NCBI GenBank assembly: GCA_002269645.1
Contig: NIVC01001976.1
Span: 152,767-216,766, forward strand
Length of the DNA stretch: 64,000 nt
Reading direction: 5' to 3'
Source: Macrostomum lignano
Taxonomy: Eukaryota
A program made the position numbers and the translations under genes. Below, piece after piece: positions 880 to 53,980 of this stretch; the first letter of the stretch is position 1; every line of letters starts with the position of its first letter. Under the pieces are notes generated by a model. The model was not told the DNA's origin. It did not search any database and saw nothing but the letters and a program-made list of their open reading frames with translations.

Positions 880-1241
880 GCTCTCAGACGACTCCAAGCA
901 AGACATGCGCCTGAGCAAGTGGCTGCATCGACTGCTCAGCGATGCGGGATTCACCGAGCAGAGAGCAAAGTGTCAGCAGAGACTGGCTCGCTGGCTCGAA
1001 GAAGTCGCTCGAGTCCTTGCACAGGATGGCAGGCAGATGACGGGCAGCTACGTAGAGGGCTGGGCCAACAGTCTGGTGCAAGTGAACGGCAGGACAGCTG
1101 CAGACTCGGACATTGACTGGACTGTGCTGGTTGATGGGCAAGAGTTCCATCTGGAAGGTGTCTGCAAAGGATATGGTTCCTGCCGAGACGCCACTCGGCT
1201 GAAGGTCACGGAGGGCCACGCACAGGTGGCAGTGGGAGCAG
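880..1241 (+). CDS. Gene 1 exon 3: N-lobe of cGAS/Mab-21-like nucleotidyltransferase (cGLR)
   Basis: Acceptor TCATTCCAG|G (exon starts 880), donor GCAG|GTGAGT (intron starts 1242); 362 nt = 1+360+1. Encodes MTGSYVEGW...AADSDIDWTV (GS and DxD motifs). Confidence 0.85.
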
Positions 1242-1802
1242 GTGAGTGAGGCTGGGTTCATCCTCAGAATGCTGAGATCCGCATGCAACTGGAAGCCCAT
1301 TAACTTTGCTCAATTTTAAATTTGCAATGGAGTGGCGCCCAGCCTCCAGCAGCTTCTGTGACTGCGAATGTCGGCTTGGGTGCTGAAACAAGCGGCAGGC
1401 GAAATTGAAAAGAAAACTCTGATGCGCACTCGTAGATACTGCTGAATCATTGTCGTGTTTTAATATAGGAATGTACATCTCGCTTTATATGTACATTTAT
1501 GCCAACAACTCTATCGTTCACTGCCCCGCGGAGCTTTCGTGTTTTTTATCCCACACTGCCAAATACCGTGGGTTTCACAGATACGAGTAGTACTTGTCTA
1601 AAGAGGTATTCAGCTATCTTTATTCTGGTCGAATGAATTATCGAGCTTTGAAACTACCGAACTGAAGCTCTACATTGCGCGCTTTTCTTTATTATTCTTA
1701 TCAAGTCTTCAAGTCAATTATATCTTTTTGATAATTACAAACCGGGTTTCGTTTTAAAAATAAGAAAATTGAGTGGAAACTTCCACCTTTTAGGTTGGAA
1801 AG

Positions 1803-2044: not shown

Positions 2045-2809
2045 TCAGGAATAGGTCAGCCGATCAGGGGCTTTTCGGAGCCTCTGACTTCGACGAGAAA
2101 CTTGGTACTCGGGACTTTGATCGCTGGTTGTCTCCACTTCAGCAGGAGTCGTAGTCTCCATTTCCTTCTCCTTGCTGCTGCCAACATTGGCAGGTCTAGG
2201 CGAGGTAATCTCTTGTGAGTTCTCTGTAGTCCTTGGCGTTGCATCAGATGCATGGACAACCCGTCCTTTGCTGTCCAAGTAGGTATTTGATCCATGAAGT
2301 TCTTGGATTTCTTCTGGGACCTTGTCTGACTTTCCTTCGACGTTGATGTAGACAGGAATTGGGGTAGTTAGCGGTTTGTCCCATTCTGTAAAGGTTGCAG
2401 TGAGGCGCGTTCTTGGGCGTTGCATAAACAGTTGTGCAGCAGGAATCGCTCCTTCGGAATTCGGTGTAGTGTTCTTCGAAAGGCAGAATGATATCAACAC
2501 CTTCTCACATTCGGAACCTATGTCATTACTGTTCTGCTTCAGAGTCACTTTCAACTCTTGGATAGCTCTCTCCACAATCCCATTTGACTGGTGATGACCA
2601 GGTGGTGTTAGGACGTGGTTAATTAGATTCTTCTTGAGAAATTCTGCGAACTCTTTTGATCGAAAATTGGTTCCATTGTCAGTCACAATGCACGTTGGAA
2701 GTCCCATGTTCTTAAATGTTCGTCTGCATGCTGGAATAAGAGAGTTGGCTGTGAGATTTGACAGCTGATGTACATCAATCCACCGAGAGAACGAGTCGAT
2801 GAGAACCAA
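2045..2809 (-). pseudogene. pol: Integrase core of Mag-like element
   Basis: LIDSFSRW, IVTDNGTNF, SNGIVERAI (D,D35E). Joined to the upstream pol frame by a 1-bp frameshift near 2820. Confidence 0.9.
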
Positions 2810-4421
2810 GAAGTGTTTCTCCTTTGAAATATGCTATGTCCAGATGAACACGTTCGAAGAAGAACTTTGAATCCTCCCATGAATGCAGATTTGCATTTGT
2901 TCGCTTTCTCGAATTTAGTTGGCAGGAAGGACACCTTTGAACGAAGCTATTGATCTGGGCGTCAATGTAAGGCCACCAGAAGTACTCTCGAGCTAGTCTG
3001 ATCATGCGCACAATGCCCGGATGATTCTCGTGAAGAATTTGAAGACTTTCTTTGCGCATGGACTTTGGAGGCACGATTCGGATCCCTTTAAACAGAATCC
3101 CGTTTTGAATGGAGTATTCCGCCTTGGATTTGGTGTACGGAAGAAGCTGTTTAGAAATGTAGCTTGGCCAACCTTGAGTAACAAACTTCTTGATAATATC
3201 AATTTCAGGGTCTCTGGTGTTGGCGACACGCCGAAGAATTGTCCCAGAAGAAGAAAATTCTACGAGAGAGTTTACCTCCAGCAGATTGACATCAAATTTT
3301 GAAAACGAAGTAGAAGCGTTTGTTGAAGGAATTCTGGACAGAGTATCTGCTGCGAGCATGGTGTCTCCCTTTGAGTAAGTGACGGTGTAGTCATAGGATC
3401 TGAGCAGCAATGCCCATCTCTGGAGTCTCGCAGAAACTCGGTCAGGAACTTTCGTTGTAGAGAAGATGTACTGCAAAGGTCTGTGATCAGAGATGATGGT
3501 AAAATGACGGCCTGCCAGAAATTGATGAAAATATTTTAAACCCTCGATGATTGCAAGAGCCTCCCGCTCAATGCGATAGTTGGCGTCAGCCTTGGTCAAA
3601 ACTCTGCTTCCCAGCCATACAACTTCTTTTTGGTTCGTGTCGTGGGACAGCACAAATCCTACTCCACTCTGAGAAGCGTCGCAGGTTAGAAACAACGGCC
3701 TCTTTATATCATAAGAAACGATTCGACCTTCCGTTACAGCAGCTTTCAGTTGGGAGAACGCACCTGAGTGAACGACGGTCCATTTCCACTGAACCCCTTT
3801 CTTTAGGAGGTAATAGAGCGGCTTGGCGATCATAGAGAAATTCCGACAAAAAATCCCGTAGTGTCTTAAGGTGCATATAGCACTTCTCAATTGATCCCGG
3901 TCCTTTGGCTCTGACAAGTTGGATAGAGCTTCCACTCTTGCAGGATCAGGCAGAAGTTTCCCATCTCGGAGGAGAAGTCCCAAAAATTTGACTTCTTTCT
4001 TGCACTCCTGAGTCTTACGCTCATTGATCTTGAATCCATGCTTTTTCAGTTTTTCCTTGACTTGCACCAGGATCTGTCGATGCTGCTCCACTGTTTCAGT
4101 GCCTAGAATGATGTCGTCCTGATAAGAAGCAGTGCCTGGTATTCCTTTGAGCAAGATATCCATAACTTCCTGAAATATCAGTGGTGCTGCCGATATCCCA
4201 AATTGTAACTTGCGGAAGGCAAAATGCCCTACGTGGGTGGAAATACACGTAAAATCCTGACTTTCTGGCGTTAGGGAAATCTGCAAGAATGCGTCTTCGA
4301 GGTCGAGCACTGAATACACTTTCGAATTTGGGATCTTTTGAAGGATTTCTTTCAAAGTTGGCAGTCGATATCGATCTCTCGGTCTATCAGTCTGTTGAGA
4401 GTGACTGAATAGTCTCCACAC
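2775..4421 (-). pseudogene. pol: RT, RNase H and integrase HHCC finger of Mag-like element
   Basis: LDLEDAFLQI, LQFGISAAP, YQDDI; TCDASQSGVG, EREALAII, SDHRPL, ADTLSR; HENHPG...CPSC. An extra GA near 4378 shifts the frame from the gag-PR ORF. Confidence 0.92.
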
Positions 4422-5704
4422 AGTCTAATGGGTCTCTTTGATCCTTCTGGTTTCAACACAGGAACAATAGGGCACGATACCTTAGGCGAGTGAACTGGGT
4501 AGATGATACCTGCACTTTCCAGTCCTTTCAGCTCCAGTTCAACCAAAGTTTTAATTGAGAACGGAAGGGATCTGGCAGGAAAGCACATTCCATCGTCCTT
4601 CAGGCGAAAGCTGGCCTGGAATCTTGAATTTTCATCACACTGCACTGGATGGCACAGAAATTCGTCTACCGTCAATAGGTTGAAGGCACGAATAAAATTT
4701 ATTCCCAAAATGGCTTGACTGGATGGGTCCCCGACATATATGTCTCCGCATGCCGTTTTGCCATTTCTCAGCTCAATCGTGACGTCCTTAGCCATGCCTC
4801 GTACGGAAACTGAAGCTCCCCCGAAAACTTTGAGTGATCGAATGTCCGCGTCAACCATGTGCAATCCGGCTTGCTCTACGATGGTTACTGGCAAAATTGT
4901 TACCTGACTACCAGAGTCGACGCACATATGGACTGTGGAATCACCGATCGTGCAGACTATTTTCCAGAGTTCGTCGCATGGAGTAGCCTTGATCACCGAG
5001 TACACAGCTGAATCAGGTGGGTCAGCGTCGGTTGCTTCAACTTCCGCGTACGTGACTTTCTTGCTGCTACCGATGTTGGACCTGCATGCTCTGGCAATGT
5101 GCCCGGTTTTTCCGCACTTGTGACATGTCACATTACGGAGCTTGCAGGTATTTCTAAGATGACCCGGGTTACCACAGGAATGGCAGCTAGACTTAGAATG
5201 ATTCGGCGCTGTTGGCATTGGCCTGGATACCGTTGGATACTTTTGGTTGCTGCCGGTCTTCTTGTGAGTGGTTTTCTGCATTGCTGCGACGGTTTTGCTC
5301 GAATCAGTAGCTTGAGATACGGACTCCGATAAGAGACTATCCTTAACCGCAGTCTCTAGATCCAGCTTTTCCTTCACTAGTAATTTTTGCTTCAGAGAAT
5401 TATCAGCCAGTCCGAAAATATACTGAGAAAGAATTAACTCTTCTCGCAGGTTGCCGAATTCGCATTTGTTGGCTTGTGTCTTCAGTCTCTCCAAAAACTT
5501 TGTCACCGACTCACCCTGTATTTGGACCATAGTATGTAGCAGATGTCTGTCGTAGTGAAGAAGGCGCTTGGGTTTCAATTGGCTCAGTGCCGCTTCTTTG
5601 ATGAAATCGAACGTACACTTTGTATCGTTTAAAATGTCTTCTGGCTGCACAAGTGTCTCAATCAGTGAAAATGCGGCATCACCACAAGTAGCAATTAGAA
5701 CGGC
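4352..5704 (-). pseudogene. gag: Gag (two CCHC knuckles), protease and RT N-terminus of Mag-like element
   Basis: CHSCGNPGHLRNTC, CHKCGKTGHIARAC, protease VDSGSQVT, RLCGDY. The N-terminal part lies at 6784-6874. Confidence 0.9.
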
Positions 5705-6783
5705 TGATGTGTTCCTTATTACCCGACTTTTGGTAATCAAAGAACACTCACTTCTAGCTCAGTAGCTAGGCAACCCAGTACGTCAACAGAAGGTATTTAA
5801 TTACCTTGAGTCCTTAAGTGAGAGCTCTCGTCAATACTCCTTGTTCGTTGATCTCGCTATCTGTAGCGTTCCTGTCCTTCAGGAATTCCGGGCGCCGGTC
5901 AACAGTTGATCTGGTCCGCTCTTGCAATGGTCTCCTTGACTTCTTGCCGGCCGGTTATCTGTAGTTCGGACCAATCGGAAGCTTCCAAATTAACAATGGG
6001 TACCCTGCGCCAAACTGCGGTTTAATGTAAGCCTACTCCTTCTAGTAGTGCCTCTATGCACTCCAGGTATGGCTCCGGAAACCACTGATAGTCTTCTAAG
6101 ATCTATCAGGGGCAGTCCTTCTGGAGACTGCAACCAGTAGAGTCTAAACAGACTCAGGAGTCTCAACAGACTCACAATAAACTCAAGTCACTCTTGGACT
6201 TGAGCGAGACGTCTCAACCAACAGGCGCAAATGAGTAAGGCTTACCGCAAGAACCCGACCACGTCTTCGAGTTGCTTCAGGAAGTCTGCTGCAGAGCTTC
6301 CTCTTCGGAGCTTTCTCTCTCGGAGATTCTGTGGCTCCGGGTCCGTTCCGGACCACTTGTATTTATAGGCAAATGGACCCCCATGAGGTCACGTGGGTCC
6401 TACTCTTCAGCTGTCAAAAAGGTCACGGTTTGGTTGCTGTCAAACTTGGCAGGGTAGAAAGTTACTCCATTGGTTCAGTGTAAAAGCGCGTGATTGGTCA
6501 TCGCATTCGAGTTATTTTTAGTTACATTTGATTGGGTCACGTGCGTACGGTTGAATGATGCATCTTTCCTGGGGTTTGCGTTCGACACGTACAGGTTACA
6601 CGTGATTGGGTGATTTCTAAATTTAGCATGCTCAAGGTCTCTCTTTTTCTATTGGTTAGTCAGAATATACTTATAATTCAAAGCATACTTTTATTCATGC
6701 TCTTCAACTTACTACTGAATAAAATGTGTGAGTAGTACGTTAACACTTTTATGTCTTTTTTACGGGAGGTAGAACACTCTACA
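5705..6783. mobile_element. Solo-LTR-like element (1,079 bp) nested in gag
   Basis: TGATGTG...CTCTACA termini with 4-bp TSD CGGC (5701-5704, 6784-6787). Removing it rejoins gag in frame. Confidence 0.85.
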
Positions 6784-7293: not shown

Positions 7294-8957
7294 GCAACCA
7301 ACCTGCAGTGAGAGCCACGGCGTGCGGTGTGCGGCCTGCACAGGACACGTGCCATGCGATCAAGTGCTGCAGCAGTTTCTGTGAGGTCAGGATTAGAAAA
7401 CTGATTGATGACACATATATTCCAGTTCACCTCGTTCGGGCGACCAGACCGAGCTCGACCAACGAGCTCAGAGTGAGCTTCAGCTTCCAAGAGAAACACA
7501 TCATGAGACGGCTGAGCACAGTCCAGGGCCAGCTGTTCACACTCATCAAGTTCATCTTCAAGAGACACTTGCCGCTCACTCTGGACACACCTGGACTCAA
7601 GACCTACCATGCAAAGACTCTGCTCTTCACAATGCTAGAGAGGCATGGCACAGATCCTGAAACTGAGGCTTGGCAGCCCCACAATCTGATCACTCTGCTC
7701 AAGGAGTCTCTCGACATGATGCTGAGCTTCATCGACTCAAGCAGCTCGCCCGATGAGTGCATGCCGCACTTCTTCATGCCCGACGCTCCGCTCTACTTCA
7801 AGAACGCTGGAATCGGTGGCGACTTTGACAACACAAAGGCGAGGATTCGAGACCGACTTTGTGAGCTGAGAAGCGACATCGGCGGAGTGGTCGAGCAGCT
7901 GAGGAGTCTCGTGAGACCTCTCCAGCCAGAGAAGTTCTACTTTCACCCGTTCACTCTGCTGCCTCTGAGTGCGCCGCCTGCTGTCACGGAGGAAAGGGAC
8001 AGTAGATACTATATACTAGAGAAATTCCGGTTCGAACACGTGTACAGTGTGGTGCATCAGTGTGTGAGCGAGCTGCAGTCGGAATCGAGCGACAGAGATA
8101 CCCTGATGAGGCAGCTCAGTCTCCTGCATGAGCTGCAGTGGTGCAAGTGCGCCGCCCTGTGCATGACCGTCATGGCGCATTTGAAGTTTGGAGAATCTGA
8201 GAAGGCTGAGAGACTCGCGATGGAGCTGCAGAGACATCAGGTTGAGTCAGGGTTGAAGCCACAGGATATTCAAGTATATGACTTGCCAAAAGACTCAGAC
8301 TGGGCGTGGAGGTTCTGCCTCCCCTGCGACTCTCCGCCTCGCTTCCCATTCCTTCCCGAGTTCACGCAGACTCTGTTCACAGCCAGACTGTCGCAGCCTC
8401 TCTCCTCCCACCTGTACGTGAACTTCCGCTGCCTGAGCTGGAGTCTCCAAGCTGAGCTGCTCCGCAATCCCGCACCTGCAATTGAACTGGAGGATTGGAA
8501 GCGAGAGCTGGAAGATGAGCCGGACTTGGAGGAGCTGCTCACTCTGGCTCACTACAGCGACTGCCGCGAGCACGTGGAGCTCAGCCTTCAGCAGATGGAG
8601 ATGATCGAGGAAGAGAGACGCGTCACCATGGAGACGCAGGACGAGGAGAAGATCGGCTGGGTCAGGCAGAAGAGGTGGCGAGTTTCGAACCGCAGCGGCA
8701 GCGACAGCGGCGCTCACCGCAGCAGGGAAGATGAGGAGCGGAGGCTGTGGGCGAGGGCGAGGCTGCGTCGAGACGGCGGGGCCGACTTTGGGCGCCTGGT
8801 TGCCATGGAAACTGCAGCGGAGCAGAGAGACAGCTGGACTCACGCCAAGCTCAGTCGGATGAGACTAGAGAAGCTGGAGAGACTTGATGCAGCAGCCGGA
8901 GTCCTCAAAGTCGAGTCGCAAAGTCGAGGTCGGAAAAGGAAGGCCGAGTCAGACTGA
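7294..8957 (+). CDS. Gene 1 exon 4: Mab-21/cGAS C-lobe plus helical tail
   Basis: Acceptor CCCTGCAG|GC gives G|GC in frame with ORF 7308..8957. Motifs QDTCHAI, LRVSFSFQEKHIM, LIKFIFK, LKTYHAKTLLF, MPHFFMP. Ends RGRKRKAESD*. Confidence 0.88.
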
Positions 8958-9419
8958 CTGCGTGGTGCGGTGTTCCGTACTGACACAAATTTCATGTAAT
9001 TTTGGTTTGTTCAATCGAACTGTTTATTTTGCTGCATGCTGGGTTGATGAGGGTTCTGCGCGTTCTGCCAATTTCTGTCTAATTTAGCAACTGAAATGCT
9101 GCTTTGTTTTCTCTGCTTTTTTAGGAAATGAGCACATGGAGAGCTATCGAGTGCGAGCAGCCCTCCTGCTATGAACTGCAGTTTTGCACATTTGTTGAAC
9201 TCATAATTTTGTAAGCTTCTTTGGCTTTTGCGTGAGCTGTTTGAGAAATTTTACTCTATTTATTTCTGACATATTTCAGATGCACTCTTGTGTCTTAAGA
9301 ATTTGTTGTCCGTTCTCTTTGGTTTTTTAAGTACCAGTTTTGAGTACTTTCTCAATCAGCCTTCAAATTTATTACATCATGTACTTTCATCATATTGTCG
9401 TGTACCCTGCAGCAACTGC

Positions 9420-10000
9420 CAGCCTGACAGCTACCTCATGAACATTCACTGACTGACAGCCTGACATCTGTTTTATGAACATTCACTGACTGACAGCCTG
9501 ACAGCTCCCTAATGAACATTCAGTGACTGACAGCCTGACAGCTCCCTAATGAACATTCAGTGACTGACAGCCTGACAGCTCCCTCATGAACATTCAGTGA
9601 CTGACAGCCTGACAGCTCCCTAATGAACATTCAGTGACTGACAGCCTGACAGCTCCCTCATGAACATTCAGTGACTGACAGCCTGACAGCTCCCTCATGA
9701 ACATTCAGTGACTGACAGCCTGACAGCTCCCTCATGAACATTCAGTGACTGACAGCCTGACAGCTCCCTCATGAACATTCAGTGACTGACAGCCTGACAG
9801 CTCCCTCATGAACATTCAGTGACTGACAGCCTGACAGCTCCCTCATGAACATTCAGTGACTGACAGCCTGACAGCTCCCTCATGAACATTCAGTGACTGA
9901 CAGCCTGACAGCTCCCTCATGAACATTCACTGACTGACAGCCTGACATCTCCCTCATGAACATTCAGTGACTGACAGCCTGACATCTCTTTTATGAACAT
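9420..10000. repeat. 37-bp minisatellite, ~15 copies
   Basis: GACAGCCTGACAGCTCCCTCATGAACATTCAGTGACT; about 6 copies in unit B (35188-35432). Confidence 0.95.
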
Positions 10001-10704
10001 CAGCTCCGTCATGAAATTTTATTTTGTTTTTTATTTCTGTTTCATATTTGTCAGAAAACGATATGAATGATAAAATTCCCTAATGTGTACTTCTGCACTA
10101 GAAGGTTTATATTATGTTTACCTGATTGTTACAGTTCGAAAATAGATTTGAAAATAATGGAAGAATTCGTGCATGAAGTCTCGAAATTTTCGACTTTTGC
10201 CCATAATGCTGCCTTTAAAGTGCGGCAAAGAGTTTTTTGGTTAAGGAAACTAAATTTGATTTTTTACGGCGGCACAACACGAGGATTGCATTGAATTCCG
10301 AATATAATATGATAATGATAAACCAAATCACAGGCAGATCCCTAAAGACAACAATAACACAAAACACATGGAACGCTGCGGGTCAAAAAAGGTCAGCCAG
10401 CACTTCATCAGCCAGCAGGCAGTCGACGAATCGCCTGTGGCTGCCTGCAGCGTCAACAGCAGCACCTCCTGAACTTCCGGCTGTGGGTGGCCACTCAACG
10501 CGGATGACTCGCTCTGAAGCATCTGAAGTGCAGCAGCCAGCGCCGCATCAGGCTGCGGTTCGAGCGAGTCCGTCAGAGTCCTGCGCTCGGCGTTGCCTGA
10601 GCTGCGCCGCCCTCTGACGGTCAGGCAAGGCTTCGGACTGCAGGGCCGCCCTCACACAGCCACAGGCAGCCATCATCTGTATTGATCTTCACGGACATCA
10701 GAAA

Positions 10705-11660
10705 CCACTGACTCATCTGTATTGGCGCCACTGACTCATCTGTATTGGCGCCACTGACTCATCTGTATTGGCGCCACTGACTCATCTGTATGGCGCCACT
10801 GACTCATCTGTATCGGCGCCACTGACTCATCTGTATTGGCGCCACTGACTCATCTGTATTGGCGCTACTGACTCATCTGTATTGGCGCCACTGACTCATC
10901 TGTATTGGCGCCACTGACTCATCTGTATTGGCGCTACTGACTCATCTGTATTGGCGCCACTGACTCATCTGTATTGGCGCCACTGACTCATCTGTATGGC
11001 GCCACTGACTCATCTGTATCGGCGCCACTGACTCATCTGTATTGGCGCCACTGACTCATCTGTATTGGCGCCACTGACTCATCTGTATTGGCGCCACTGA
11101 CTCATCTGTATTGGCGCCACTGACTCATCTGTATTGGCGCTACTGACTCATCTGTATTGGCGCCACTGACTCATCTGTATTGGCGCCACTGACTCATCTG
11201 TATGGCGCCACTGACTCATCTGTATCGGCGCCACTGACTCATCTGTATTGGCGCCACTGACTCATCTGTATTGGCGCCACTGACTCATCTGTATTGGCGC
11301 TACTGACTCATCTGTATTGGCGCCACTGACTCATCTGTATTGGCGCTACTGACTCATCTGTATTGGCGCCACTGACTCATCTGTATTGGCGTCACTGACT
11401 CATCTGTATGGCGCCACTGACTCATCTGTATTGGCGCTACTGACTCATCTGTATTGGCGCCACTGACTCATCTGTATTGGCGCCACTGACTCATCTGTAT
11501 TGGCGCCACTGACTCATCTGTATTGGCGCTACTGACTCATCTGTATTGGCGCCACTGACTCATCTGTATTGGCGTCACTGACTCATCTGTATGGCGCCAC
11601 TGACTCATCTGTATCGGCGCCACTGACTCATCTGTATCGGCGCCACTGACTCATCTGTAT
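10705..11660. repeat. 23-bp minisatellite, ~41 copies
   Basis: CCACTGACTCATCTGTATTGGCG; contains TGACTCA and ATTGG. Confidence 0.97.
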
Positions 11661-11661
11661 C

Positions 11662-11790
11662 CGGTTGCTAAGGAAATCATCAAGCTAATCCGTTTGCTAA
11701 GGAAATCATCAAGCTTATCCGGTTGCTAAGGAAATCAAGCTTATCCAGTTGCTATGGAAGTCATCAAGCTGATCCGGTTGCTAGGGAAAT
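11662..11790. repeat. ~28-bp repeat, ~5 copies, inverted relative of the 24-bp array at 12722
   Basis: GGTTGCTAAGGAAATCATCAAGC... resembles the reverse complement of GATTCCCTAGCAACC. Confidence 0.8.
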
Positions 11791-12375: not shown

Positions 12376-12721
12376 TGGAAAAGTTCAGCCGAATGAAGCT
12401 GGTTTGCACTGAGAACGTCTGGTTCTCACGGAAACTGCTGAGACCAGCGCCCCGGATCTGCGACAGCTGCGACTCTGGTGGAGCTGCCGGAGGATGCAGG
12501 ACGGCCGGGTCAGATCAGGCCGTGTTGCCATGGAACTGGCTTGCAGGCGTCCAAACTTTCTCACCAAATAAAATTGCCAGGCCTTCTTGCTATTGCTATT
12601 GAAAGCAAAAACACATTTAGCCACCTGTACTGACCGAAAATAAACCTCTTATAAACTGCCAGCCTTATTCAAATGCAAATCTCACATCTGACACCCAACT
12701 TTTACTCGGACCAGGCAACCC

Positions 12722-13250
12722 CCCTAGCAACCTGATCAGGGATTCCTCTAGCAACCTAATCAGGGATTCCCCTAGCAACCTGATCAGGGATTCCTCTAGC
12801 AACCTGATCAGAGATTCCCCTTGCAACCTGATCTGTGATTCCCTAACAACCTGATCCGGGATTCCCTAACAACCTGATCCGGGATTCCCCTAGCAATCTG
12901 ATCTGGGATTCCCTAGCAACCTGATCTGGGATTCCCTAACAACCTGATCCGGGATTCCCCTAACAACCTGATCTGGGATTCCCTAGCAACCTGATCTGGG
13001 ATTCCCTAACAACCTGATCCGGGATTCCCTAACAACCTGATCCGGGATTCCCCTAGCAATCTGATCCGCGATTCCCCTAGCAACCTGATTAAGGATTCCC
13101 CTAGCAACCTGATCAGGGATCCCCTATTAACCTGATCCGCGACTCTCCTAGCAACGTGATCAAAGATTCCCCAAGCAACCCTATTAGGGATTCCCCAAGC
13201 AACCCTATTAAGGATTCCCCTAGCAACCCGATCAAGGATTCCTCTAGCAA
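12722..13250. repeat. 24-bp minisatellite, ~22 copies
   Basis: CTAGCAACCTGATCAGGGATTCCC; about 14 copies in unit B (38538-38875). Confidence 0.95.
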
Positions 13251-13572
13251 CGCGATCTGCTAATTATAGACATGTTTGATTGGCAGTCAATGAATTTCTC
13301 TAGTATTCGGTTTTCGTGTTCTCGCTCATACACACAATCACACAGGGTGCACAGAGGCCCGGACTGTCTAATCGGCAGGCATGTACACTCTCTGTGGCCT
13401 GGGGGTTGGCGGTACACGAGCTGCAACTCCATCAATATTTAGTCACTACTGACTACTGCTTTTTAAGATTGTTAGTAGTAGGTAAGGAGAATGCTCAGCA
13501 TAATTAACATTTAATAACTTTATATTATGATGCGAGGTGTATTGACAAAAATAATAAAACATCTTCATGCAC

Positions 13573-13646
13573 GGGCGTGGAGGTTCCGCCTCTCCTGCGA
13601 CTCTCCGCCTCGCTTCTCATTCCTTCCCGAGTTCACGCAGACTCTG
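13573..13646 (+). pseudogene. Displaced ~74-bp fragment of cGLR exon 4
   Basis: GGGCGTGGAGGTTCCGCCTCTCCTGCGACTCTCCGCC...GCAGACTCTG matches 8302-8375 with few mismatches; also present in unit B at ~39153-39226. Confidence 0.85.
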
Positions 13647-13927
13647 CTCTCGTGAGATGCTGCTCAGCTGTGGCAAACCCAGACGGTGTCGGCATGTCGA
13701 CCAGGTGAAGCCTTGGCGGTCTAAACGACTAAAGGCTGGGGATTCCAGCTGCGTGTTTGTTGCATCAAGCTCCGGGTTTTCTGATTGGTCGAGCCCGGGA
13801 TGACCAGCTCGACTCTGATTGGCTGAGCTCGAAACTCTGAAATCCTCTCGACCTTTGAGACCCCATTGGACTTGGCAGGTGCGAGCATAAATCATAAAAA
13901 TGGGTAAGGCTAGCCAACAAGATGAAA

Positions 13928-14875
13928 GATAGGTGATCATATATCAACTGTGACAGGTAGGTGATCATATATCTAATTTGACAGGTAGGTGATCATATAT
14001 CAAATGTGACAGGTAGGTGATCATATATCAAATGTGACAGGTAGGTGATCATATATCGACAGATAAGCCACTCAACAAAAGTAGATACCACAGAAACCAT
14101 TGACTCTTATTGACCCCATTGACCCCATTGACCCCATTGACCCCATCGACCTCATTGACCCCGTTGACCCCATCGACCTCATTGACCCCATTGACCCCAT
14201 TGAGCCCCTTTGAGTGAGTCTTCAATGAGTGAGTCACCAATGTGGCCTCAGCTCACAGTCACCAATGAGTGAGTCACCAATCCGGCCTCAACTCACAGTC
14301 ACCAATGAGTGAGTCACAAATCTGGCCTCAGCTCACTCCAGTGCGCCAATTCCAGGCCGCTGCGGGCAGCAGGAAAAGGGCGCCAATGCCAGGCCACAGT
14401 GAAGGGGCAGCAGGAAAAGGGCGCCAATGCCAGGCCGCAATGCAGGGGCAGCAGGAAAAGGGCGCCAATGCCAGGCCGCAATGCAGGGGCAGCAGGAAAA
14501 GGGCGCCAATACCAGGCCGCAATGCAGGGGCAGCAGGAAAAGGGCGCCAATGCCAGGCCGCAGTGCAGGGGCAGCAGGAAAAGGGCGCCAATGCCAGGCC
14601 GCAGTGCAGGGGCAGCAGGAAAAGGGCGCCAATGCCAGGCCGCAGTGCAGGGGCAGCAGGAGAAGGGCGCCAATACCAGGCCGCAATGCAGGGGCAGCAG
14701 GAAAAGGGCGCCAATGCCAGGCCGCAGTGCAGGGGCAGCAGGAAAAGGGCGCCAATGCCAGGCCGCAATGCAGGGGCAGCAGGAAAAGGGCGCCAATGCC
14801 AGGCCGCAGTGCAGGGGCAGCAGGAAAAGGGCGCCAATGCCAGGCCGCAGTGCAGGGGCAGCAGGAGAAGGGCGC
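13928..14875. repeat. Cluster of 28-bp (13928-14056), 9-bp (14108-14205), 40-bp (14225-14335) and 41-bp (14345-14875) tandem repeats
   Basis: Units GACAGGTAGGTGATCATATATCAAATGT; GACCCCATT; GAGTGAGTCACCAATCTGGCCTCAGCTCACAGTCACCAAT; GCGCCAATGCCAGGCCGCAATGCAGGGGCAGCAGGAAAAGG. Confidence 0.93.
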
Positions 14876-17800
14876 AATGGCTGCGGTGCAGAGGCTGCAT
14901 TTGAGCGCCGGTCCTCAGCGGCTGTCCTGGCGGGGTCGCCAGAAGGGCAGCTCAAAACTTCAGTGCTTCCTCAGCTCAGCCCAGTGGATTCGCCCCTGCT
15001 GCAAAATGGCTGAGTGCCGCACTGCTCAAACTCAAACTGCTGCAGGATGGTGGAAGCAAGAGGAGAGCAAATGCTGTGTGTGGCAGGTGGGCGAGCGGTC
15101 AGCCCTGGCAACACGGGAGACATAGGAGCGGTCAGAACAAAAAAGTGTTCTGCATCACAAATTTTCATGGTTGGGTTTTATAACATAGTGAAAATATTTT
15201 CTTTGAAACTTCCCCTACCATAAACACTGAGCTCGTGCTCAGTTTCCACTGAAACTCAGTTGTGTTATGTAGTATTGTGAGCAGACAGTCAGCTGCCTCC
15301 GCCAATATTTACAAGCTGCTCTTTGGAAACGAACCGGCCTGGGCCGCCTAAGCCTTCCACGTCTGCTGCGCTCCCCGCGGCCAGCTTATCCATTGTTTTG
15401 GGGTGGACCAGAGGTTCCGCTTTCCAATGTGCGTTTCAGCCCCACTTCTGCCAGTACGCAGCCAAGTTCTACTCAATTGTCTGAGGGTAGGGATTACCTG
15501 CAGTTGCCCTGTCAGCCATCCGGATGTACGGGAATGAATTTCTGTGACGGCTGCGTAAGCTCCGTTTCCCTCCCGGCCTTCCCTCCAGCTCTCCCCTGCA
15601 TTGTTTGGTCTTCCTACCTCTGACCCTCTGTCTCTTCATTTCATCTCAAGTACCGTGTTTGCTTGCTGCAGAGCCTCCTGTCTGCTTTTGCAAGTTCCGC
15701 CTTCTCTGCAAACTGCGAGTCTCTGCCTGCCGCTCCATCTGCAGATTGACGAGTTCAAAATCATAACTGGCAATCGGTGAGTCCTTCTCTGCCCTGCTTC
15801 AGTCTGCTGGGCTGGCATTGAAGTGAGCTGTCAGTTAGGCTTGCGATTAGGCTGGGAAAATGTGCTGACGCCCCCGGCGCTAACGAAGCCGTCACAGCCT
15901 CACAGTCACTTCAATATGGGGCCGGATGATTAGCAGAAGCTGACTGACCATCTCACATTCTTACAGATAACTGATAACCCAATTAACTGTTTAAATTGGT
16001 GCCACTTGAAACAACAGCGATTATAACAAAGGATAATAATAATTAGAGACACGCAGACGATATACTACTGCCAGTAGGGTGAGGCGTCACTTTGAACAGC
16101 CGGTCAGGTCGCTTGTAAATATGAATAAAAAACAGAGCTGGCAGTGGGAGAAGCCCGGACCGGTGCGGCAGGCTTTGAGACTCGCCGCACAGCAGGGGGC
16201 CGGCAGGTTGCATTTCTAACAGGCAACAGCACACTGTAACACCCTGATTCTGTGATATTGTGCATGACTGTCGATTTGTCGACGGTATTGTCTGTGTCTG
16301 CTGTCTACAACTGGATGATATTGTATTTTTCGAGCCATTAAATTTCTTCTCAGTCCTCAAAACGAGGACTCAGAAACGATAGGTTGAGGACTCAGAAAGA
16401 AACGATTTTAGGACTTAAACGATTCAATCGTCTCATACGAGTAGAAGCAAGATGAATACAAATGTGCAACAACGAGGCAAAAAGTAGTTAAAAGTGGAAA
16501 ACAATTGTCCAAAAGTTCATCACATTAAGAGCGTATTAACTCTGTAAATGTAGACAGTCACTCCCATGCAACAGCTGAATTAAAGCATTGCACTTGCTCC
16601 CATCCTGTTTGCGCTTTTCGAAAAAGAATCGCCTCAGAAGATATTTCCAACTGCCTCGACTCGGTTCTTCAATCGGTTTGGAGACAAGTGCTTTGGTTTC
16701 ACCTTGCTAATCTGTGCAATCTCATGAGGTCACACAAATTGTTAAGATGAGGAGCCAGCACTGAATGTATGACTCTGACTGACTCTCTATGCTAGTCTGG
16801 CCAAAATGAGATGGCCATATGCGTTTCCAACCCTCTTCTCCTGCCAATGCGCTGTCAAATTGTACTCATTGGTGTGCGGGCAGGGCCTTCTTTCCTGTGC
16901 TCTGTGCTTGCACCATCAGCCCTCCTGTCGTGCGGGAATGACTTTCTGTGACGGCTTTGTACGCTCGTTTCGACAAGCGCTCACTCTGCTGTGCATTTCT
17001 GTGCTTTGCTTGACTTTTGGCTTGCCATTCTCTTCCAGATTGCTTTCCAACCAGCGTTCAATACCTCTGTAGCAGCCCACCATAATTTATTTGGTCTCTT
17101 ATTTTTCCACAAGTACCGTGTTTGGTTATTGCAGAGCGCCCTTTCTGCTTTTGAGAGTTGTGCTTTCTCTGCGAGTCTCTGCTGCCAGAAGCCTTGCGAG
17201 TTCAGAACTGGCCATCGGTGAGTCCTGCACTGCCCTGCTGCAGTCTGCTGTGTTGGCGTTGGAGTAAGCTGTCGATTTCCCACTCACTGAATCCTTTACT
17301 CTAAATTCACAGACTGGCTTCTCCTTCTGTTCTCCCTCCTTCTTCCCCTCTTCTTTCCCCTGTTTTTCTCGCTCCCCTCTTTTTCCCTCGAGTTCAGGTT
17401 TACTCTGGGCTGAGACCTGACCACTGTGACTACTTACACTGCTCAGTAGGAGAGATTTTAAGATCTCAGACTGCACTGAGGCCCAATGGGTCAGCTCAGC
17501 CTCATCAAGTACAGCTTGGCGTGGCCGCTGCAACCGCAGACTCTCCGTTGCCATGCTGGGTGCACAGAGGCGAAGGCGGCGACTCAGCGCTCATGCTCGG
17601 GAGAGAAGTTTCGGCTGCTCAGGCCGGGGTGGTCGGCCTCGCATGAGACTACAGAGTGTGGGCAGCTGAGAGACTTTGGCAACCTGCTGCACAAACGTTT
17701 GAAATGCATGCCTCTCTGACTGCAGCCGTGACTGACATCTGCCACTCTGACAACATCTAGGAATCATTAGGTATTCCCTTCACAAGTCTTCAAAATCACG

Positions 17801-17917: not shown

Positions 17918-20875
17918 ATGAGCCAACAAATCAGTGCCGATGAGGCCGCCAAGACAGGAAATATCCAGGCACTCAAACATCATCTGGACCTTCAGAGAGA
18001 AACAAACAGGATATATCTTTTTTGCAAAAGCTATTCTAAACTTGCCGCAAGAAAGGGTCAGTTAGACGTGGTCAAGTTTCTCGTGTCTAAAGTCACTGAC
18101 CAAACAAACAGAGATCAGTGCTGCATCGAGGCTGCAGAATCTGCTGCATACAATGATCAGTGGAAAGTCATCAAGTTTCTCGTGCCTGAAGTCGCTGACC
18201 AAACAAAAAGAGATCAGTGCTGCATCGAGGCTGCCACATCTGCTGCATACAATGGTCAGTTAGAAGTGGTCAAGTTTCTCGTGCCGAAAGTCGCTGACCA
18301 AACAAAAAGAGATCAGTGCTGCATCAAGGCTGCCAAATCTGCTGCATACAATAGTCAGTTAGAACTGGTCAAGTTTCTCGTGCCGAAAGTCGCTGACCAA
18401 ACAAAAAGAGATCAGTGCTGCATCGAGGCTGCCAAATCTGCTGCAGTCGAGGGTCACTTAGAAGTCGTCAAGTTTCTCGTGCCGACAGTCGCTGACCCAA
18501 CAAAAAGAGATCAGTGCTGCATCGAGGCTGCAGAATCTGCTGCTGACAATGATCAGTGGGGAGTCGTCAAGTTTCTCGTGCCGACAGTCGCTGACCAAAC
18601 AAAAAGAGATCAGTGCTGCATCGAAGCTGCCACATCTGCTGCATACAATGATCACTGGGAAGTCGTTAAGTTTCTCGTGTGGATAGTCGCTGACCAGACA
18701 AAAAGAGATCAGTGCTGCATCGAGGCTGCCAAATCTGCTGCATACAATGGTCAGTTAAAAGTGGTCAAGTTTCTCGTGCCGAAAGTCGCTGACCAAACAA
18801 AAAGAGATCAGTGCTGCATCGAGGCTGCCAAATCTGCTGCAGTCGAGGGTCACTTAGAAGTCGTCAAGTTTCTCGTGCCGACAGTCGCTGACCCAACAAA
18901 AAGAGATCAGTGCTGCATCGAGGCTGCAGAATCTGCTGCTGACAATGATCAGTGGGAGTCGTCAAGTTTCTCGTGCGACAGTCGCTGACCAAACAAAAAG
19001 AGATCAGTGCTGCATCGAAGCTGCCACATCTGCTGCATACAATGATCACTGGGAAGTCGTTAAGTTTCTCGTGTGGATAGTCGCTGACCAGACAAAAAGA
19101 GATCAGTGCTGCATCGAGGCTGCCAAATCTGCTGCATACAATGGTCAGTTAAAAGTGGTCAAGTTTCTCGTGCCGAAAGTCGCTGACCAAACAAAAAGAG
19201 ATCAGTGCTGCATCAAGGCTGCAATATCTGCTGCAGTCAAGGGTCACTTAGAAGTCGTCAAGTTTCTCGTAGCGATAGTCGCTAACCAGACAAAAAGAGA
19301 TCAGTGCTGCATCGAGGCTGCAAAATCTGCTGCATACAATGGTCAGTTAGAAGTGGTCAAGTTTCTCGTGCCGAAAGTCGCTGACCAAACAAAAAGAGAT
19401 CAGTGCTGCATCAAGGCTGCAATATCTGCTGCAGTCAAGGGTCACTTAGAAGTCGTCAAGTTTCTCGTGGCGATAGTCGCTGACCAAACAAAAAGAGATC
19501 AGTGCTGCATCGAGGCTGCAGAATGTGCTGCATACAATGGTCAGTTAGAAGTGGTCAAGTTTCTCGTGCCGAAAGTCGCTGACCAAACAAAGAGAGATCA
19601 GTGCTGCACCGAGGCTGCAAAATGTGCTGCATACAATGGTCACTTAGAAGTCGTCAAGTTTCTCGTGCCGAAAGTCGCTGACCAAACAAAAAGAGATCAG
19701 TGCTGCATCAAGGCTGCCAAATCTGCTGCAAGAAATGGTCAGTGGGAATTCGTTAAGTTTCTCGTGCCGACAGTCGCTGACCAAACAAAAAGAGATCAGT
19801 GCTGCATCGAGGCTGCCAAATCTGCTGCATACAATAGTCAGTTAGAACTGGTCAAGTTTCTCGTGCCGAAAGTCGCTGACCAAACAAAAAGAGATCAGTG
19901 CTGCATCGAGGCTGCCAAATCTGCTGCAGTCGAGGGTCACTTAGAAGTCGTCAAGTTTCTCGTGCCGACAGTCGCTGACCCAACAAAAAGAGATCAGTGC
20001 TGCATCGAGGCTGCAGAATCTGCTGCTGACAATGATCAGTGGGGAGTCGTTAAGTTTCTCGTGCCGACAGTCGCTGACCAAACAAAAAGAGATCAGTGCT
20101 GCATCAAGGCTGCCAAATCTGCTGCTGACAATTATAAGTGGGAAGTCGTTAAGTTTCTCGTGCCGATAGTCGCTGACCTGACAAAAAGAGATCAGTGCTG
20201 CATCGAGGCTGCCAAAACTGCTGCAAGCGAGGGTCAGTGGGAAGTCGTCAAGTTACTCATCTTGTGTCTCTCAAGTTCGGATAAGAGAGCGAATCTCCGT
20301 TTCCAATACGCAGTCCCGGCTTGCTCTCGTCTCCGCGAAGATGTCGTTGCCTCCCTCGGCCTTGAGCCCGACTGGCTCTTCCAATCCAGCACCATCCTCA
20401 GCTTTACTGCAGCAATGGCCATCGAAGGCAGGAACTCTGTTCTCAACGACACACTCTCTCGTATGCAGCCAGCTCACATCACACAGCTGCTCCGTCTCTC
20501 CATCTCTCAAAGACACGTCGCACATGCTGTCGCAATTGCTGTCACACTGATCAATGATGAGCGAGTCAGCACACAGCATGTCGATCTGCCAGACAGCACT
20601 GGAGCCACTGCTCTCATGCTGGCAGCTGATGCAGGTCATCACGAGCTCATTGAGAAACTCATCGATCTCGGTGCGTCAGTGTGTGCTGAAGACAGTCAGG
20701 GTCGGACTGCTCTGTCACGAGCGTGCGAAGCCGGTCACGTGCGAGCAGCCAAGGCTCTGAAGGACGGAGGAGCGGATGCGAGTCATCGAGACGGTCAGGG
20801 TCAGACGTGTGCGCAGGTGGCAGAGCGATTCGAGCGGTGGCAGGTGCTGCGGCTGCTGGATCCCATTGGAGCGGG
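17918..20875 (+). CDS. Gene 2 exon 1: 22 variable 33-aa ankyrin-like repeats plus ~3 canonical ankyrin repeats
   Basis: Unit ADQTKRDQCCIEAAKSAAYNGQLEVVKFLVPKV (99 bp). Canonical C-terminal repeats GATALMLAADAGHHELIEKLI and GRTALSRACEAGHVRAAKAL. Phase-2 donor GG|GTGAGT (intron starts 20876). Two 1-bp deletions near 18955-18977 split the ORF. Coding sequence upstream of 17918 is possible (acceptor CTTCTAG at 17888). Confidence 0.85.
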
Positions 20876-21631
20876 GTGAGTGTTGGTCTAGGCAAAACTG
20901 AGCCAGGTCATGTTTGCATGCGAAGAAGACTACGATTGAACAGAACCATGCTCACTGGCAAGCGCAAATGTACAAACTGTTAGGGGTAAAACGATAGCGC
21001 GCAAGAATGACCAGTCACGGGAGGGAGAGAGAGAGAAAGTGACAGTGAAACAACGTGAAAACTAAGGTACAACTCGAACAGTGAGTGAGGCGGGAATTTT
21101 GCGAACATCTTTTCATGATATTATCATTTTTTTAAGCTAAGCACAAGCAATCTGGAGCCCCCCTACGGGGTGCACACATGGACAATTCCTTCTTCTGTTT
21201 TATAAATCACCTTATTCGAGTAAAATTGTCACGGACAAAGATGTTTCCTAAGAATCTCTATTTTGTGAAAGTAACAAAAATGCGAAAAATTACAACAAAA
21301 TAACACAACAAAGATAACACGCATTTGTCTTAATAGAATGAATAACTCAGACCGCAAGCATCCCCCAAATAGCAAGCATCCTCCGGTAGCATGCACCCCC
21401 TCCCTAGATAGCAAGTACCCCCCAGATGGAGAGCAACCCAGACACGAAGCATCCTACCCCCCCCCCCCCCAAGATGATAGAAAGCAACCCAGACAGCAAG
21501 CAATCCTACCCTCCCCCCCCCAAGATACAAAGCATACGCCCCAGCAAGCACCCCCAAACAATAGCAAGCACCCCCAAAATACAATCTCAAGTATCCCCCA
21601 GATAGCATACCCCAAGATGGCAAGATTCTTA

Positions 21632-22517
21632 GCAATAATCCTTGGTTTATCAAGTGCAGTAATCCTTGGTTCATCAAGTGCAGTAATTCTTGGTTCATCA
21701 AGTGCAGTAATTCTTGGTTTATCAAGTGCAGTAATCCTTGGTTTATCAAGTGCAGTTCCTTGGTTTATCAAGTGCAATAATCCTTGTTTCATCAAGTGCA
21801 GTAATCCTTGGTTCATCAAGTGCAGTAATCCTTGGTTTATCAAGTGCAGTAATCCTTGGTTTATCAAGTGCAATAATCCTTGGTTTATCAAGTGCATTAA
21901 TCCTTGGTTTATCAAGTGCAGTAATCCTTGGTTTATCAAGTGCAATAATCCTTGGTTTATCAAGTGCAATAATCCTTGGTTTATCAAGTGCAGTAATCCT
22001 TGGTTTATCAAGTGCAGTAATCCTTGTTTCATCAAGTGCAGTAATCCTTGGTTCATCAAGTGCAGTAATCCTTGGTTTATCAAGTGCAATAATCCTTGGT
22101 TCATCAAGTGCAGTAATCCTTTGTTTATCAAGTGCAGTAATCCTTTGTTCATCAAGTGCAGTAATCCTTGTTTCATCAAGTGCAGTAATCCTTGGTTCAT
22201 CAAGTGCAGTAATCCTTGGTTTATCAAGTGCAGTAATCCTTGTTTCATCAAGTGCAGTAATCCTTGGTTCATCAAGTGCAGTAATCCTTGGTTTATCAAG
22301 TGCAGTAATCCTTGTTTCATCAAGTGCAGTAATCCTTGGTTCATCAAGTGCAGTAATCCTTGGTTTATCAAGTGCAGTAATCCTTGGTTTATCAAGTGCA
22401 ATAATCCTTGGTTTATCAAGTGCAGTAATCCTTGGTTTATCAAGTGCAGTAATCCTTGGTTCATCAAGTGCAGTAATCCTCGGTTTATCAAGTGCAGTAA
22501 TCCTTGGTTTAGCAAGT
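21632..22517. repeat. 24-bp satellite, ~37 copies (intron 1 of gene 2)
   Basis: ATCAAGTGCAGTAATCCTTGGTTY. Confidence 0.97.
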
Positions 22518-23716
22518 TGATGTAACCACGTTTTGATCGCGGGGTCATGTCAGGAAATTTTCGAAATGTCCCCGATCCCCTTTGACCCACTGGGCAGAGC
22601 TGTCGAGACTGGACCGGGTGCCTGACCAGGCGCAATGACTCCCGCTCTGTAGCGACCCCCTGCTGTCTCTGTTCCGTCTCCCACTCAGACACACTTGCCC
22701 TTCCGGAGCCCCCTGTTTGTGCACCTCGTCTGCCTCCCCATTTCTCATGCGCCACACCCCATGCATCATGTACTTCTCATGTTTCCCATCTTTTTGTCAA
22801 CGTTATAGCACGGTTTTCTTGCGCTGTCCCTTCTTCATCCCGTGCCTACTTAGAGTATTGCTTGTGCTCCTCGTCACCCTATCTCCTTTTAGAATCCCAA
22901 ATGGTGACGCAAGGCTCGTGATCCCTCCTTCACCCCGATGACTCGATCATCACCCTCCTCTTTCGCAGCCTTTTCTCATGCTACGAGTATTATTCTCTTA
23001 TCAAAATTTCTCATGCGACACCCACCCCTCCTCCGCCTCTATTATTCTCTTTTACTATTTTTTGTTCTCCTTTGTGCACATAATTATCACATTTTTCCAG
23101 ATTTTCTCGTTTTTTTGTTCTCGTTTTCGCACCCAATTGGCATCCCTCTCTCGATTTTTGCTCTGCTATTGTTCTCGGTTCTCCCCAATTATCCCCGTTT
23201 TCCATTTCCTTTGATCTCGTTCTGGATCCCATTGTTCTTATTTGCTTACGCAACACTTCTTCGGCTCCCCGCTGTGCTCATTTTCCCCCACCCCTCCTCC
23301 AAATTGCGCAATTCTCCCATTTCTCATGTTGCTATGCCGTTGTCATACTTCTCATCATGACTCATTGACGCCATTTTCCCGGCAGCCAATCAGAGAGAGG
23401 GAGTCTTGGAAACGAGCTTGGAGCGGCCGCTGTGAGGACTATTTAAAGAAGTGATTTTCGGCTTGATAGCCTCCAGAAGTCTTTCTTTCCTTCCTTCGGA
23501 TGGTTGCCTTTGGCCTTTGCTACGGCTAACGCCTAGGGCTTGTACCTTCGGTCCTACCTTTGGACTCGTTTCGTCTATAAGACGAACCTATGCCTGCCCG
23601 CGGTCCAGCATGCTCAGCATCACCTGAGCTTCATCAGCGCCTCGTCGCTTCAGCGCATCGCCACTTCACTACCTGCCTGTCTGCAGTCAACAGCCGCCCT
23701 CGGTCACTCCATCGCC

Positions 23717-23758
<42 letters not shown>

Positions 23759-24450
23759 AGCTGCCGGTGAGTTCCTGTACTGATACTCTAATCGACCTTG
23801 CTTATCCGGGGTTTGCTTATTTCCCATTGCTTGATTAGAGAACTGAGCCATTTGTGTACCGTACTTTGCTGCATTTTACTCAATAGTGAAGCCGCCGAAT
23901 CGCCTGCTTATTTCGCCTAAGGGCCTAATTATTAAAAATTACTAAACTCCTCCTTATTCACTCTTTCACCACCATTTCACTCATGAGTTGCTGAGCCTTT
24001 CTCCCTGGGTGACAAAGCATAAGGAAGTTTGGGTAAGCTAATGGCCTCTCCCTGTGCAAACCCCGCCTGTGAGTGCGTGCTGCGGGTCCGTGTGTGCGTG
24101 CAGTAGAGGGAATTAGCGAGTTGTGGCACAGAATGGCAGCAGGAAGGTTGCAACCCCATGCTGACGCGTCCCTTCGCCCTGAGCAATCTGAACTTTAGCT
24201 AGCACATGTTCACCTCACACTACTCTTAGTAATTGAAGCCGCAAGTCCGCCTCATTCACAGCCACAAAGGATCCCCTGCTGAGAAATCCTCCAGGTTGAT
24301 CCCAGAATACCCGATTGTGCCCAAAGCAGAGTCCTTTTTGGGCGGGACAGTCTGGAGCTGGAGGTCCTTCAGGTAATTGCCCGGTCATAGGCAGCCTACG
24401 GTCATTGCTCCTCCCTGCGAAGCGGACGGCCATCAAGGGCGGTTACATCA
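22518..24450 (+). mobile_element. Solo-LTR-like element family A (1,933 bp)
   Basis: TGATGTAACC...GGTTACATCA termini. Flanks AAGT/AATT; the orthologous copy at 50906 has a perfect AAGT TSD. Internal CCAAT and TATA-like box, and (CT)n. Orientation is arbitrary. Confidence 0.8.
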
Positions 24451-26690: not shown

Positions 26691-26809
26691 ATTCCATTGT
26701 TTAAGAAAGGCTACCTTTAAAGAGAAGAAAACTCAGCGAAAAAATAGCGAAAAAAATCACCATGTTAAACATAACAGAAGCGCTCTGTCGAACATAAAAG
26801 ACTCATTGG

Positions 26810-29729: not shown

Positions 29730-29786
<57 letters not shown>

Positions 29787-29806
29787 AACAACAACAATAA
29801 CAACAA
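29272..29806 (+). mobile_element. Retroposed (non-LTR or SINE-like) insertion with (CAA)n tail
   Basis: 13-bp TSD GCAGCAGCTGCAC (29259-29271, 29807-29819); (CAA)n tail at ~29725-29806; absent from units A and C. Confidence 0.8.
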
Positions 29807-51755: not shown

Positions 51756-51794
<39 letters not shown>

Positions 51795-53857: not shown

Positions 53858-53980
53858 GTGAGTGAGGCTGGGTTCATCATCAGAATGCTGAGATCCGCAT
53901 GCAACTGGAAGCCCATTAACTTTGCTCAAATATAAATTCGCAACCGAGTGGTGCCCAGCTTCCAGCAGCTTCTGTGACTG

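Follow-up and report, generated by a model that had tools for sequence, protein, structure and literature searches.

Organization of the locus

The window, by which we mean the whole stretch of DNA analysed, comprises 64,000 nucleotides of the Macrostomum lignano assembly GCA_002269645.1 (contig NIVC01001976.1, positions 152,767 to 216,766), and its self-comparison reveals a minisatellite-rich tandem repeat unit of about 25.5 kb and three paralogous genes on the plus strand. The genes are laid out as a Met-starting exon of 99-nt (33-aa) ankyrin repeats, an exon 3 and a last exon of about 1.5 kb, and the 5' part of gene 1 is located upstream of the window start.

Exon 3 of gene 1 (880-1241, plus strand, 362 nt) is a complete internal exon, which read from position 881 gives LSDDSKQDMRLSKWLHRLLSDAGFTEQRAKCQQRLARWLEEVARVLAQDGRQMTGSYVEGWANSLVQVNGRTAADSDIDWTVLVDGQEFHLEGVCKGYGSCRDATRLKVTEGHAQVAVGA, and it encodes the N-terminal helices and the GS and DxD motifs of a nucleotidyltransferase. 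Its counterparts are found at 29945-30309 in gene 2 (365 nt) and at 53487-53857 in gene 3 (371 nt), both on the plus strand. The exon borders are common to the three copies, with the acceptor cattccag/G and the donor GCAG/gtgagtgagg, and the phase is equal throughout, so the exon indels that had been reported as in-frame are indeed so. A 26-aa block, EGWANSLVQVNGRTAADSDIDWTVLV, which contains D75, D77 and D79, occurs three times in the window (1055-1132, 30120-30197 and 53668-53745, plus strand), and the claim that it is the same in all copies holds also at the DNA level, where the 78 nt beneath the block, and about 100 nt in all, are identical.

The last exon of gene 1 (7294-8957, plus strand) encodes the remaining nucleotidyltransferase (NTase) core, the Mab-21_C lobe and a C-terminal domain in an intact open reading frame, and that of gene 2 (32998-34484, plus strand) is also intact, so both genes have intact exons 3 and 4. 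The last exon of gene 3 (58450-59886, plus strand) has lost a single nucleotide at each of two places, about 58935 (CCC to CC) and about 59713 (GG to G), and its 3' end is diverged. The QDT triplet that had been described in this exon is kept, within RPAQDTC[H/Y]AI, in all three copies (7341-7349, 33045-33053 and 58497-58505).

The ankyrin exon of gene 2 (17918-20879, plus strand) starts with Met and consists of an array of 99-nt repeats. The array appears to be frameshifted once, near 18950-18990, though an assembly error could account for this. The ankyrin exon of gene 3 (43948-46997, plus strand) has a frameshift near 46600, which brings the total in this gene to three, two of them in exon 4. 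Judged from its reading frames, gene 3 is probably a decaying copy or pseudogene, unless the frameshifts are homopolymer errors, and the initial annotation of an active enzyme does not extend to it, given the two 1-nt deletions in exon 4 and the frameshift in the ankyrin exon. Both ankyrin exons have at least 20 near-identical 33-aa repeats, far more than the annotated paralogues, and the number of repeats apparently differs between copies.

The remaining sequence is rich in repeats and mobile elements. Intron 3 of gene 1, and of this gene only, contains a gypsy-like LTR retroelement on the minus strand (2045-5740) with zinc-knuckle gag, aspartyl protease, reverse transcriptase, RNase H and integrase domains, and intron 3 of genes 2 and 3 contains a different integrase fragment (31898-32524 and about 56523-57741). 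Intron 2 of gene 1 has a minisatellite with about 15 copies of a 50-nt unit (86-825); at this place the unit is present just once or twice in genes 2 and 3, and gene 2 has an additional (CAA)n run (29730-29806). More minisatellites, with units of 22-41 nt, are present between the genes (9415-10003, 10705-11790, 12721-13257, 14217-14879, 21632-22517, 26041-26693 and 49091-50905) and give long spurious open reading frames. A solitary 26-aa fragment of the last exon, 69-85% identical to the paralogues, lies in intergenic DNA at 13575-13652 and 39155-39232, and a segment of the repeat unit (23614-24336 and 51759-52511) recurs inverted at 60338-61219 with 84-86% identity.

Fold and catalytic motifs

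The AF2 model has a pLDDT of 82 and a pTM of 0.85, and its best 50 Foldseek matches in the PDB are all cGAS structures (E 2e-7 to 5e-6, target TM 0.43-0.55). A family profile matches cGLR1 (8gjy, E 9e-8) and mouse and human cGAS (E 2e-7 to 2e-6) in the PDB, and the alignment places ELRVSFSFQEK on WRLSFSHxEK of cGAS and YHAKT on YHVKT, while a single-sequence phmmer search of the PDB gives a weak match to the cGAS C-lobe alone (E 0.2). The Pfam model Mab-21_C (PF20266) is matched with 24.9 and 26.8 bits, just above the cut-off of 24.1, and by 20 of 20 diverse family members (best E 4e-10). The structural matches (E about 2e-7), the profile matches (E 9e-8 to 2e-6) and the Mab-21_C scores above threshold thus agree with the earlier identification of a cGAS-like protein. 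PF03281, the model of the Mab-21 NTase lobe, matches neither gene 1, gene 2 nor any of the 20 members, a few of which have weak Pol-beta-type NTase matches (E 0.02-0.07), so the NTase assignment of the N-lobe is made through the predicted fold and the motifs.

In the model, the N-terminal helices span residues 2-21 and 26-47 and are followed by a strand (50-54) that ends in G55-S56, a strand (77-91) that starts with D77-I-D79 and a strand (137-146) that starts with D139. G55, S56, D77, D79, D139 and A143 are conserved in 77-85 of the 86 family domains (50%-identity clusters), and G55-S56, D77-x-D79 and D139 are retained in all three window copies. D139, which is encoded at 33048-33050 in gene 2, is the acidic residue of QDT, and its proposed role as the third catalytic acidic residue is corroborated by the retention of D139 and A143 in 77 of 86 domains and by its place at the opening of strand 137-146. 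Distant members have D-[LIV]-V-x-A-[FY] at this position and the window genes have D-T-C-[HY]-A-I; this agrees with the pattern in human cGAS, in which we take D319 to be followed by an alanine four residues on. The mapping of D139, like that of the selected sites described below, is based on the order of secondary-structure elements and on family motifs rather than on distances. The predicted fold and the motifs are those of an active cGAS-type nucleotidyltransferase.

As in vertebrate cGAS (4k9b, 6edc), the predicted fold is bilobal (Foldseek E 2e-7, target TM about 0.5), an N-terminal helical spine precedes beta-1 with GS and beta-2 with DxD, and the R-x-S-F-S-x-x-E-K motif and the Y-H-x-K-T helix can be aligned. 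The identity is, however, only 11-17%, the loop between GS and DxD is about nine residues longer in the flatworm proteins and bears the family signature EGW[AG]NSL...NG, an insertion is lacking at the position of the Zn thumb, and the proteins have an additional domain of about 270 aa at the C-terminus and an array of ankyrin repeats at the N-terminus.

His and Cys residues are nearly invariant around a hypervariable loop of the N-lobe, which in gene 2 is flanked by H90, C95, C102, H114, C146 and C147 (30213-30251 and the 33066-33074 region), and distant members have H-x(3,4)-C-x-C at the brackets of this loop. Judged from their conservation, these residues may form a candidate N-lobe metal site, which would be placed unlike the zinc thumb of cGAS.

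A family of ankyrin-repeat cGLRs

The spliced product of gene 2 matches at least 39 proteins, nearly all from M. lignano and at most 86% identical, and the best database matches are M. lignano proteins with 84-86% identity whose annotation goes no further than ANK-repeat or Mab-21_C. Among cluster representatives, searched exhaustively, there are 166 relatives. Li et al. 2023 included five M. lignano proteins among the cGLRs that they cloned for their screen (PMC9980059, supplement 3, entries 89-93). Entry 93 is PAA68676.1 (P0008, from locus L001), which is 81% identical to gene 2, and entry 92 is PAA93208.1, a P0012-like protein. In that study ankyrin-repeat fusions are a minor cGLR architecture and flatworms are mostly without cGLRs beyond Mab21-like proteins; the M. 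lignano enzymes are absent among those characterised in its main text, which gives no activity for the family.

The window genes are therefore a tandem triplet of ankyrin-repeat cGLRs that belong to a large M. lignano-specific family of a kind already catalogued. They share with the cGLRs of Li et al. 2023 the family, the GS...DxD...D motif and the Mab-21_C lobe, but are at most 86% identical to any catalogued protein, and the hypervariable patches, gene conversion and tandem arrays of the flatworm family are absent from that work (PMC9980059). Among the relatives, P0032 has SNVN in place of SDID and is probably a catalytically dead paralogue, and P0004 and P0046 have two cGLR domains per predicted protein.

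Divergence of exon 3 among the three copies

The estimate of about 22 amino acid differences between exon 3 of genes 1 and 2 is accurate, since 22 substitutions and one 1-codon indel are found in 121 aligned residues. The further claim that the surface around the catalytic core had diverged far more than the non-coding DNA stands for one pair of copies only. Between genes 1 and 2 the non-core exon differs at 33 of 260 positions (12.7%) and the adjacent intron ends at 10 of 184 (5.4%; Fisher p=0.014), whereas the contrast is not significant between genes 1 and 3 (28/260, 10.8%, against 14/184, 7.6%; p=0.32) nor between genes 2 and 3 (31/263, 11.8%, against 16/184, 8.7%; p=0.35). The start of intron 3 of gene 1 (1242-1425, plus strand) is little diverged from that of gene 2 (4/184 nt). 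The intergenic open reading frames that had served as the comparator (10237-10617 and 35672-36052) translate identically, as described, and differ at 2 of 381 nt, but they belong to the most conserved block of the repeat unit (97.9% identity), and the other intergenic blocks are 82.6-96.3% identical. As a general statement, the contrast between exon and non-coding DNA is overstated.

The invariance of the core needs a similar qualification. The amino acids of the 26-aa block are identical in the three window copies, but synonymous differences are also zero, so this invariance among three copies is not by itself evidence for protein-level selection, and homogenisation explains it better than purifying selection alone.

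The dN/dS of exon 3 (Nei-Gojobori) is 1.39, 1.36 and 0.80 for the three window pairs. In the helix part the ratio is 1.7-2.6 (pN/pS 1.6-2.5), with merely 2-4 synonymous differences (Fisher p 0.25-0.60), and dN is not significantly higher than dS among the three copies, neither exon-wide nor in the helix (Fisher p 0.25-0.84). In the 3' half of the exon dS is 0.12-0.30 and dN is 0.09-0.12, so synonymous divergence there is as high as non-synonymous divergence or higher, a result that the initial annotation had itself counted against selection.

Hypervariable patches and gene conversion

Exon 3, its flanks and the last exon were extracted from eleven further M. lignano loci (such as L001 and L011). 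The donor and acceptor are the same in all paralogue copies, and intron 3 varies from 70 nt to 17 kb. Its first 45 nt or so are conserved in nine paralogues (window positions 1242-1286, 30310-30354 and 53858-53902, and loci L001-L004, L007 and L011), and the rest of the intron differs among these nine in sequence and in length (235 nt to 17 kb). The conserved 45 nt fit conversion tracts that cross the exon border, and could alternatively be a splicing element.

The protein alignment has a near-invariant framework that is broken by short hypervariable patches, which are located in part of helix 26-47, in the Cys-Cys loop after EFHLEG and at four places in the last exon. The patches are discrete stretches of 5-20 codons whose length changes only in frame. 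The Cys-bracketed loop, which follows strand beta-2 (plus strand, 1163-1183 in gene 1, 30228-30251 in gene 2 and 53776-53799 in gene 3), shows only in-frame length variation in 13 paralogues, and the exon 3 length variants of 362, 365, 371 and 380 nt all keep the phase in 10 gene copies, which argues for coding constraint.

Synonymous and non-synonymous differences rise and fall together along the gene (pS 0.04-0.12 for the framework, 0.35-0.53 for the patches), and no 20-codon window along the gene has pN higher than pS. Region-wise rates were estimated by maximum likelihood on a fixed tree. The core has a synonymous rate 0.13 times the gene mean (p=1e-7) and an omega of 0.66, and the hypervariable parts have synonymous rates 1.7-6 times the mean. 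For the helix block the synonymous rate is 0.46 times the mean and omega is 1.67 (p=0.09 against 1), and for the Cys-loop the values are 6.0 times and 0.49 (p=0.057), so omega is not significantly above 1 for either of these regions as a whole.

In comparison with the 60%-identical paralogue L010, the core has a pS of 0.69 and a pN of 0.11, which indicates that its low dS among close copies reflects recent homogenisation and not constraint at the nucleotide level. An RNA or DNA element that freezes the core is rejected, since its synonymous sites are saturated against this distant paralogue. Over long times, then, the core behaves as a motif under classical constraint on the protein, with synonymous sites that change freely.

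In a Sawyer-type run test, gene 2 and L005 share an identical tract that spans about 285 nt and 50 polymorphic sites in a row (p=0.0002, or 0.006 after Bonferroni correction), and a whole hypervariable patch is common to L003 and L006. The Cys-loop of gene 3 is identical in DNA to that of L004, which is located on a different contig, and nearest neighbours switch along the gene. A PHI-type 4-gamete test gives p=0.42, with incompatibility that does not depend on distance; as the run tests are positive, this value is not accepted as absence of recombination. The shared tracts show that paralogues located on different contigs have traded segments. The family is a mosaic, in which a framework with low divergence even at synonymous and non-coding sites alternates with hypervariable patches. 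L011, an independent paralogue, has its frameshift (about 8305-8311) in the region of the last exon that is also affected in gene 3 (58935), and pseudogenes, or indel errors, therefore recur in the family.

Codon site models and the origin of the variable positions

Site models were fitted to 12 paralogues with a home-written Goldman-Yang codon likelihood (F3x4, neighbour-joining tree, branch lengths fixed from M0, naive empirical Bayes), and exon 3 was also run with its own tree on ungapped columns (318 nt). For the whole coding sequence omega under M0 is 0.57 and the comparison of M1a with M2a gives an LRT of 375, which was rejected as stand-alone evidence because a null with synonymous-rate classes fits better than M2a (-7148.4 against -7170.9). 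With three synonymous-rate classes the LRT is 42.7 (p=5e-10), with about 10% of sites at an omega of about 6. For exon 3 alone the LRT of M1a against M2a is 43.7; it falls to 17.9 (p=1.3e-4) when three synonymous-rate classes are added, with omega at 4.3 for 19% of the sites. Overall the class with omega above 1 comprises about 15-20% of exon 3 sites with an omega of about 4-5. The maximum LRT in 40 null simulations is 4.8.

Sites with a posterior above 0.9 fall in two places. Residues 34, 40, 41 and 44 are confined to an arc of 120 degrees on the second N-terminal helix (residues 34-44; 980-1012 in gene 1 and 30045-30077 in gene 2, plus strand), and residues 85, 96, 99, 100, 103 and 104 lie in or after the Cys-bracketed loop. 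These are the sites that the initial annotation had named, the WLxx/VAx stretch of the second helix and the loop after EFHLEG. The diversifying selection that it proposed is partly supported: a class with omega above 1 is found across the 12 paralogues, but the three window copies alone have a dN/dS of 0.80-1.39, which is not significant. It is detectable only with more paralogues, and recombination, which is present among these paralogues and is known to inflate site-model tests, is a possible confounder.

We favour, with a probability of about 0.6, the reading that the exon encodes the spine helices and the first catalytic motifs (G55-S56 and D77-x-D79) of an ankyrin cGLR in which a framework subject to gene conversion is combined with diversifying selection at a minority of sites. 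The pattern that the initial annotation described is thus real but has two sources, conversion that holds the framework fixed and surplus replacements at a minority of predicted surface positions, and patchy conversion accounts for most of the contrast between core and surface. Short-tract gene conversion, acting atop an old protein-level constraint, would keep the framework similar, and diversifying selection would drive or keep apart the few surface positions, which in this exon are located along one face of helix 26-47 and within the Cys-x(4-11)-Cys loop, as might be expected of ligand-facing or antagonist-facing surfaces in a family of pattern-recognition receptors. Engagement of a ligand by the variable surface, by the ankyrin array or by both would then trigger synthesis of a cyclic nucleotide signal.

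Relaxed constraint would explain the same divergence by neutral drift of loops and helix surfaces (omega about 1) in redundant or dying copies of a family that has expanded too far, with blocks that look conserved merely through recent homogenisation or duplication and with no positive selection. Omega for exon 3 overall is 0.84-0.87, which is indistinguishable from 1, patches HV5 and HV6 have an omega of 0.9-1.1, the window copies have the non-significant pairwise ratios given above, and frameshifts are present in gene 3, in the ankyrin exon of gene 2 and in L011, all of which suit this explanation. Yet a model with an omega class above 1 improves significantly on M1a, with or without synonymous-rate classes, the observed LRT is never reached by the null simulations, 10 gene copies show only in-frame indels in the exon, purifying selection acts on exon 4 (omega 0.53, significantly below 1, p=2e-14) and patch HV3 has an omega of 2.4 (p=0.004 against 1). 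We therefore regard relaxed constraint as unlikely.

The variants could also be old ones that gene conversion has moved among the genes as cassettes, in which case the site-model signal would be a false positive that arises when one tree is imposed on recombinants. This is suggested by the climb of pS with pN in each hypervariable patch, by the synonymous rate of the loop patches, 3-6 times the mean, by the significant shared tracts, which include the entire L003-L006 patch, by the identity of the gene 3 and L004 Cys-loops on separate contigs and by the changing nearest neighbours. It is opposed by the PHI-type result, by the persistence of the exon 3 signal with its own tree and with synonymous-rate classes, and by the helix sites, which lie in an indel-free and clearly aligned region with less than half the mean synonymous rate. 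Shuffling as a full explanation appears distinctly improbable. Repeat mis-assembly or long-read indel errors, which might be suspected from the minisatellites throughout the window, the 1-nt losses in short homopolymers at both exon 4 frameshifts of gene 3 and the position of the gene 2 frameshift within a 99-nt tandem array, are very hard to reconcile as the source of the copies and their differences with about 10% divergence between copies, distinct in-frame indels, different transposons in intron 3 (the gypsy-like element being in gene 1 only) and the same pattern in independent paralogues of the assembly.

Parallels and meaning

Conserved frameworks with variable patches under gene conversion are a feature of immune receptor families such as the MHC and the LRRs of plant NLRs. 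The flatworm family resembles them in its alternation of a homogenised framework with divergent patches, and in having tandem arrays, pseudogenes and birth-and-death evolution, but its patches are only putative ligand-binding surfaces and pN/pS is at most 1 on the scale of 20 codons. In primates, the helical spines of cGAS and OAS1 have been described as targets of positive selection (Hancks et al. 2015, PMC4420275). There, as in the flatworm proteins, the fast sites are on N-terminal spine helices and inter-strand loops and the catalytic residues are fixed. The primate study compared orthologues across species with standard PAML and HyPhy, whereas the present analysis compares paralogues within one genome, with demonstrable gene conversion and a home-made test.

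cGLRs are now regarded as a major family of animal pattern-recognition receptors, for most of which the ligands are unknown, and a flatworm lineage with dozens of ankyrin-fused cGLRs is a candidate for studying the origin of new ligand specificities. The variation is focused on a few loops and one helix face, so the patches point to surfaces that can be mutated or swapped in biochemical screens. If only drift and gene conversion are at work, the locus is an ordinary decaying tandem array. A doubtful but conceivable extension of the favoured reading is that the ankyrin cGLR family forms a germline-encoded sensor repertoire, with CDR-like loops, candidates for which are the loop between the cysteines, the face of the spine helix and three to four loops of the last exon, with expandable arrays of 33-aa ankyrin repeats, and with a framework that conversion keeps uniform around selected and shuffled cassettes. 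If true, this would be a scheme of innate receptor diversification that is new for cGLRs.
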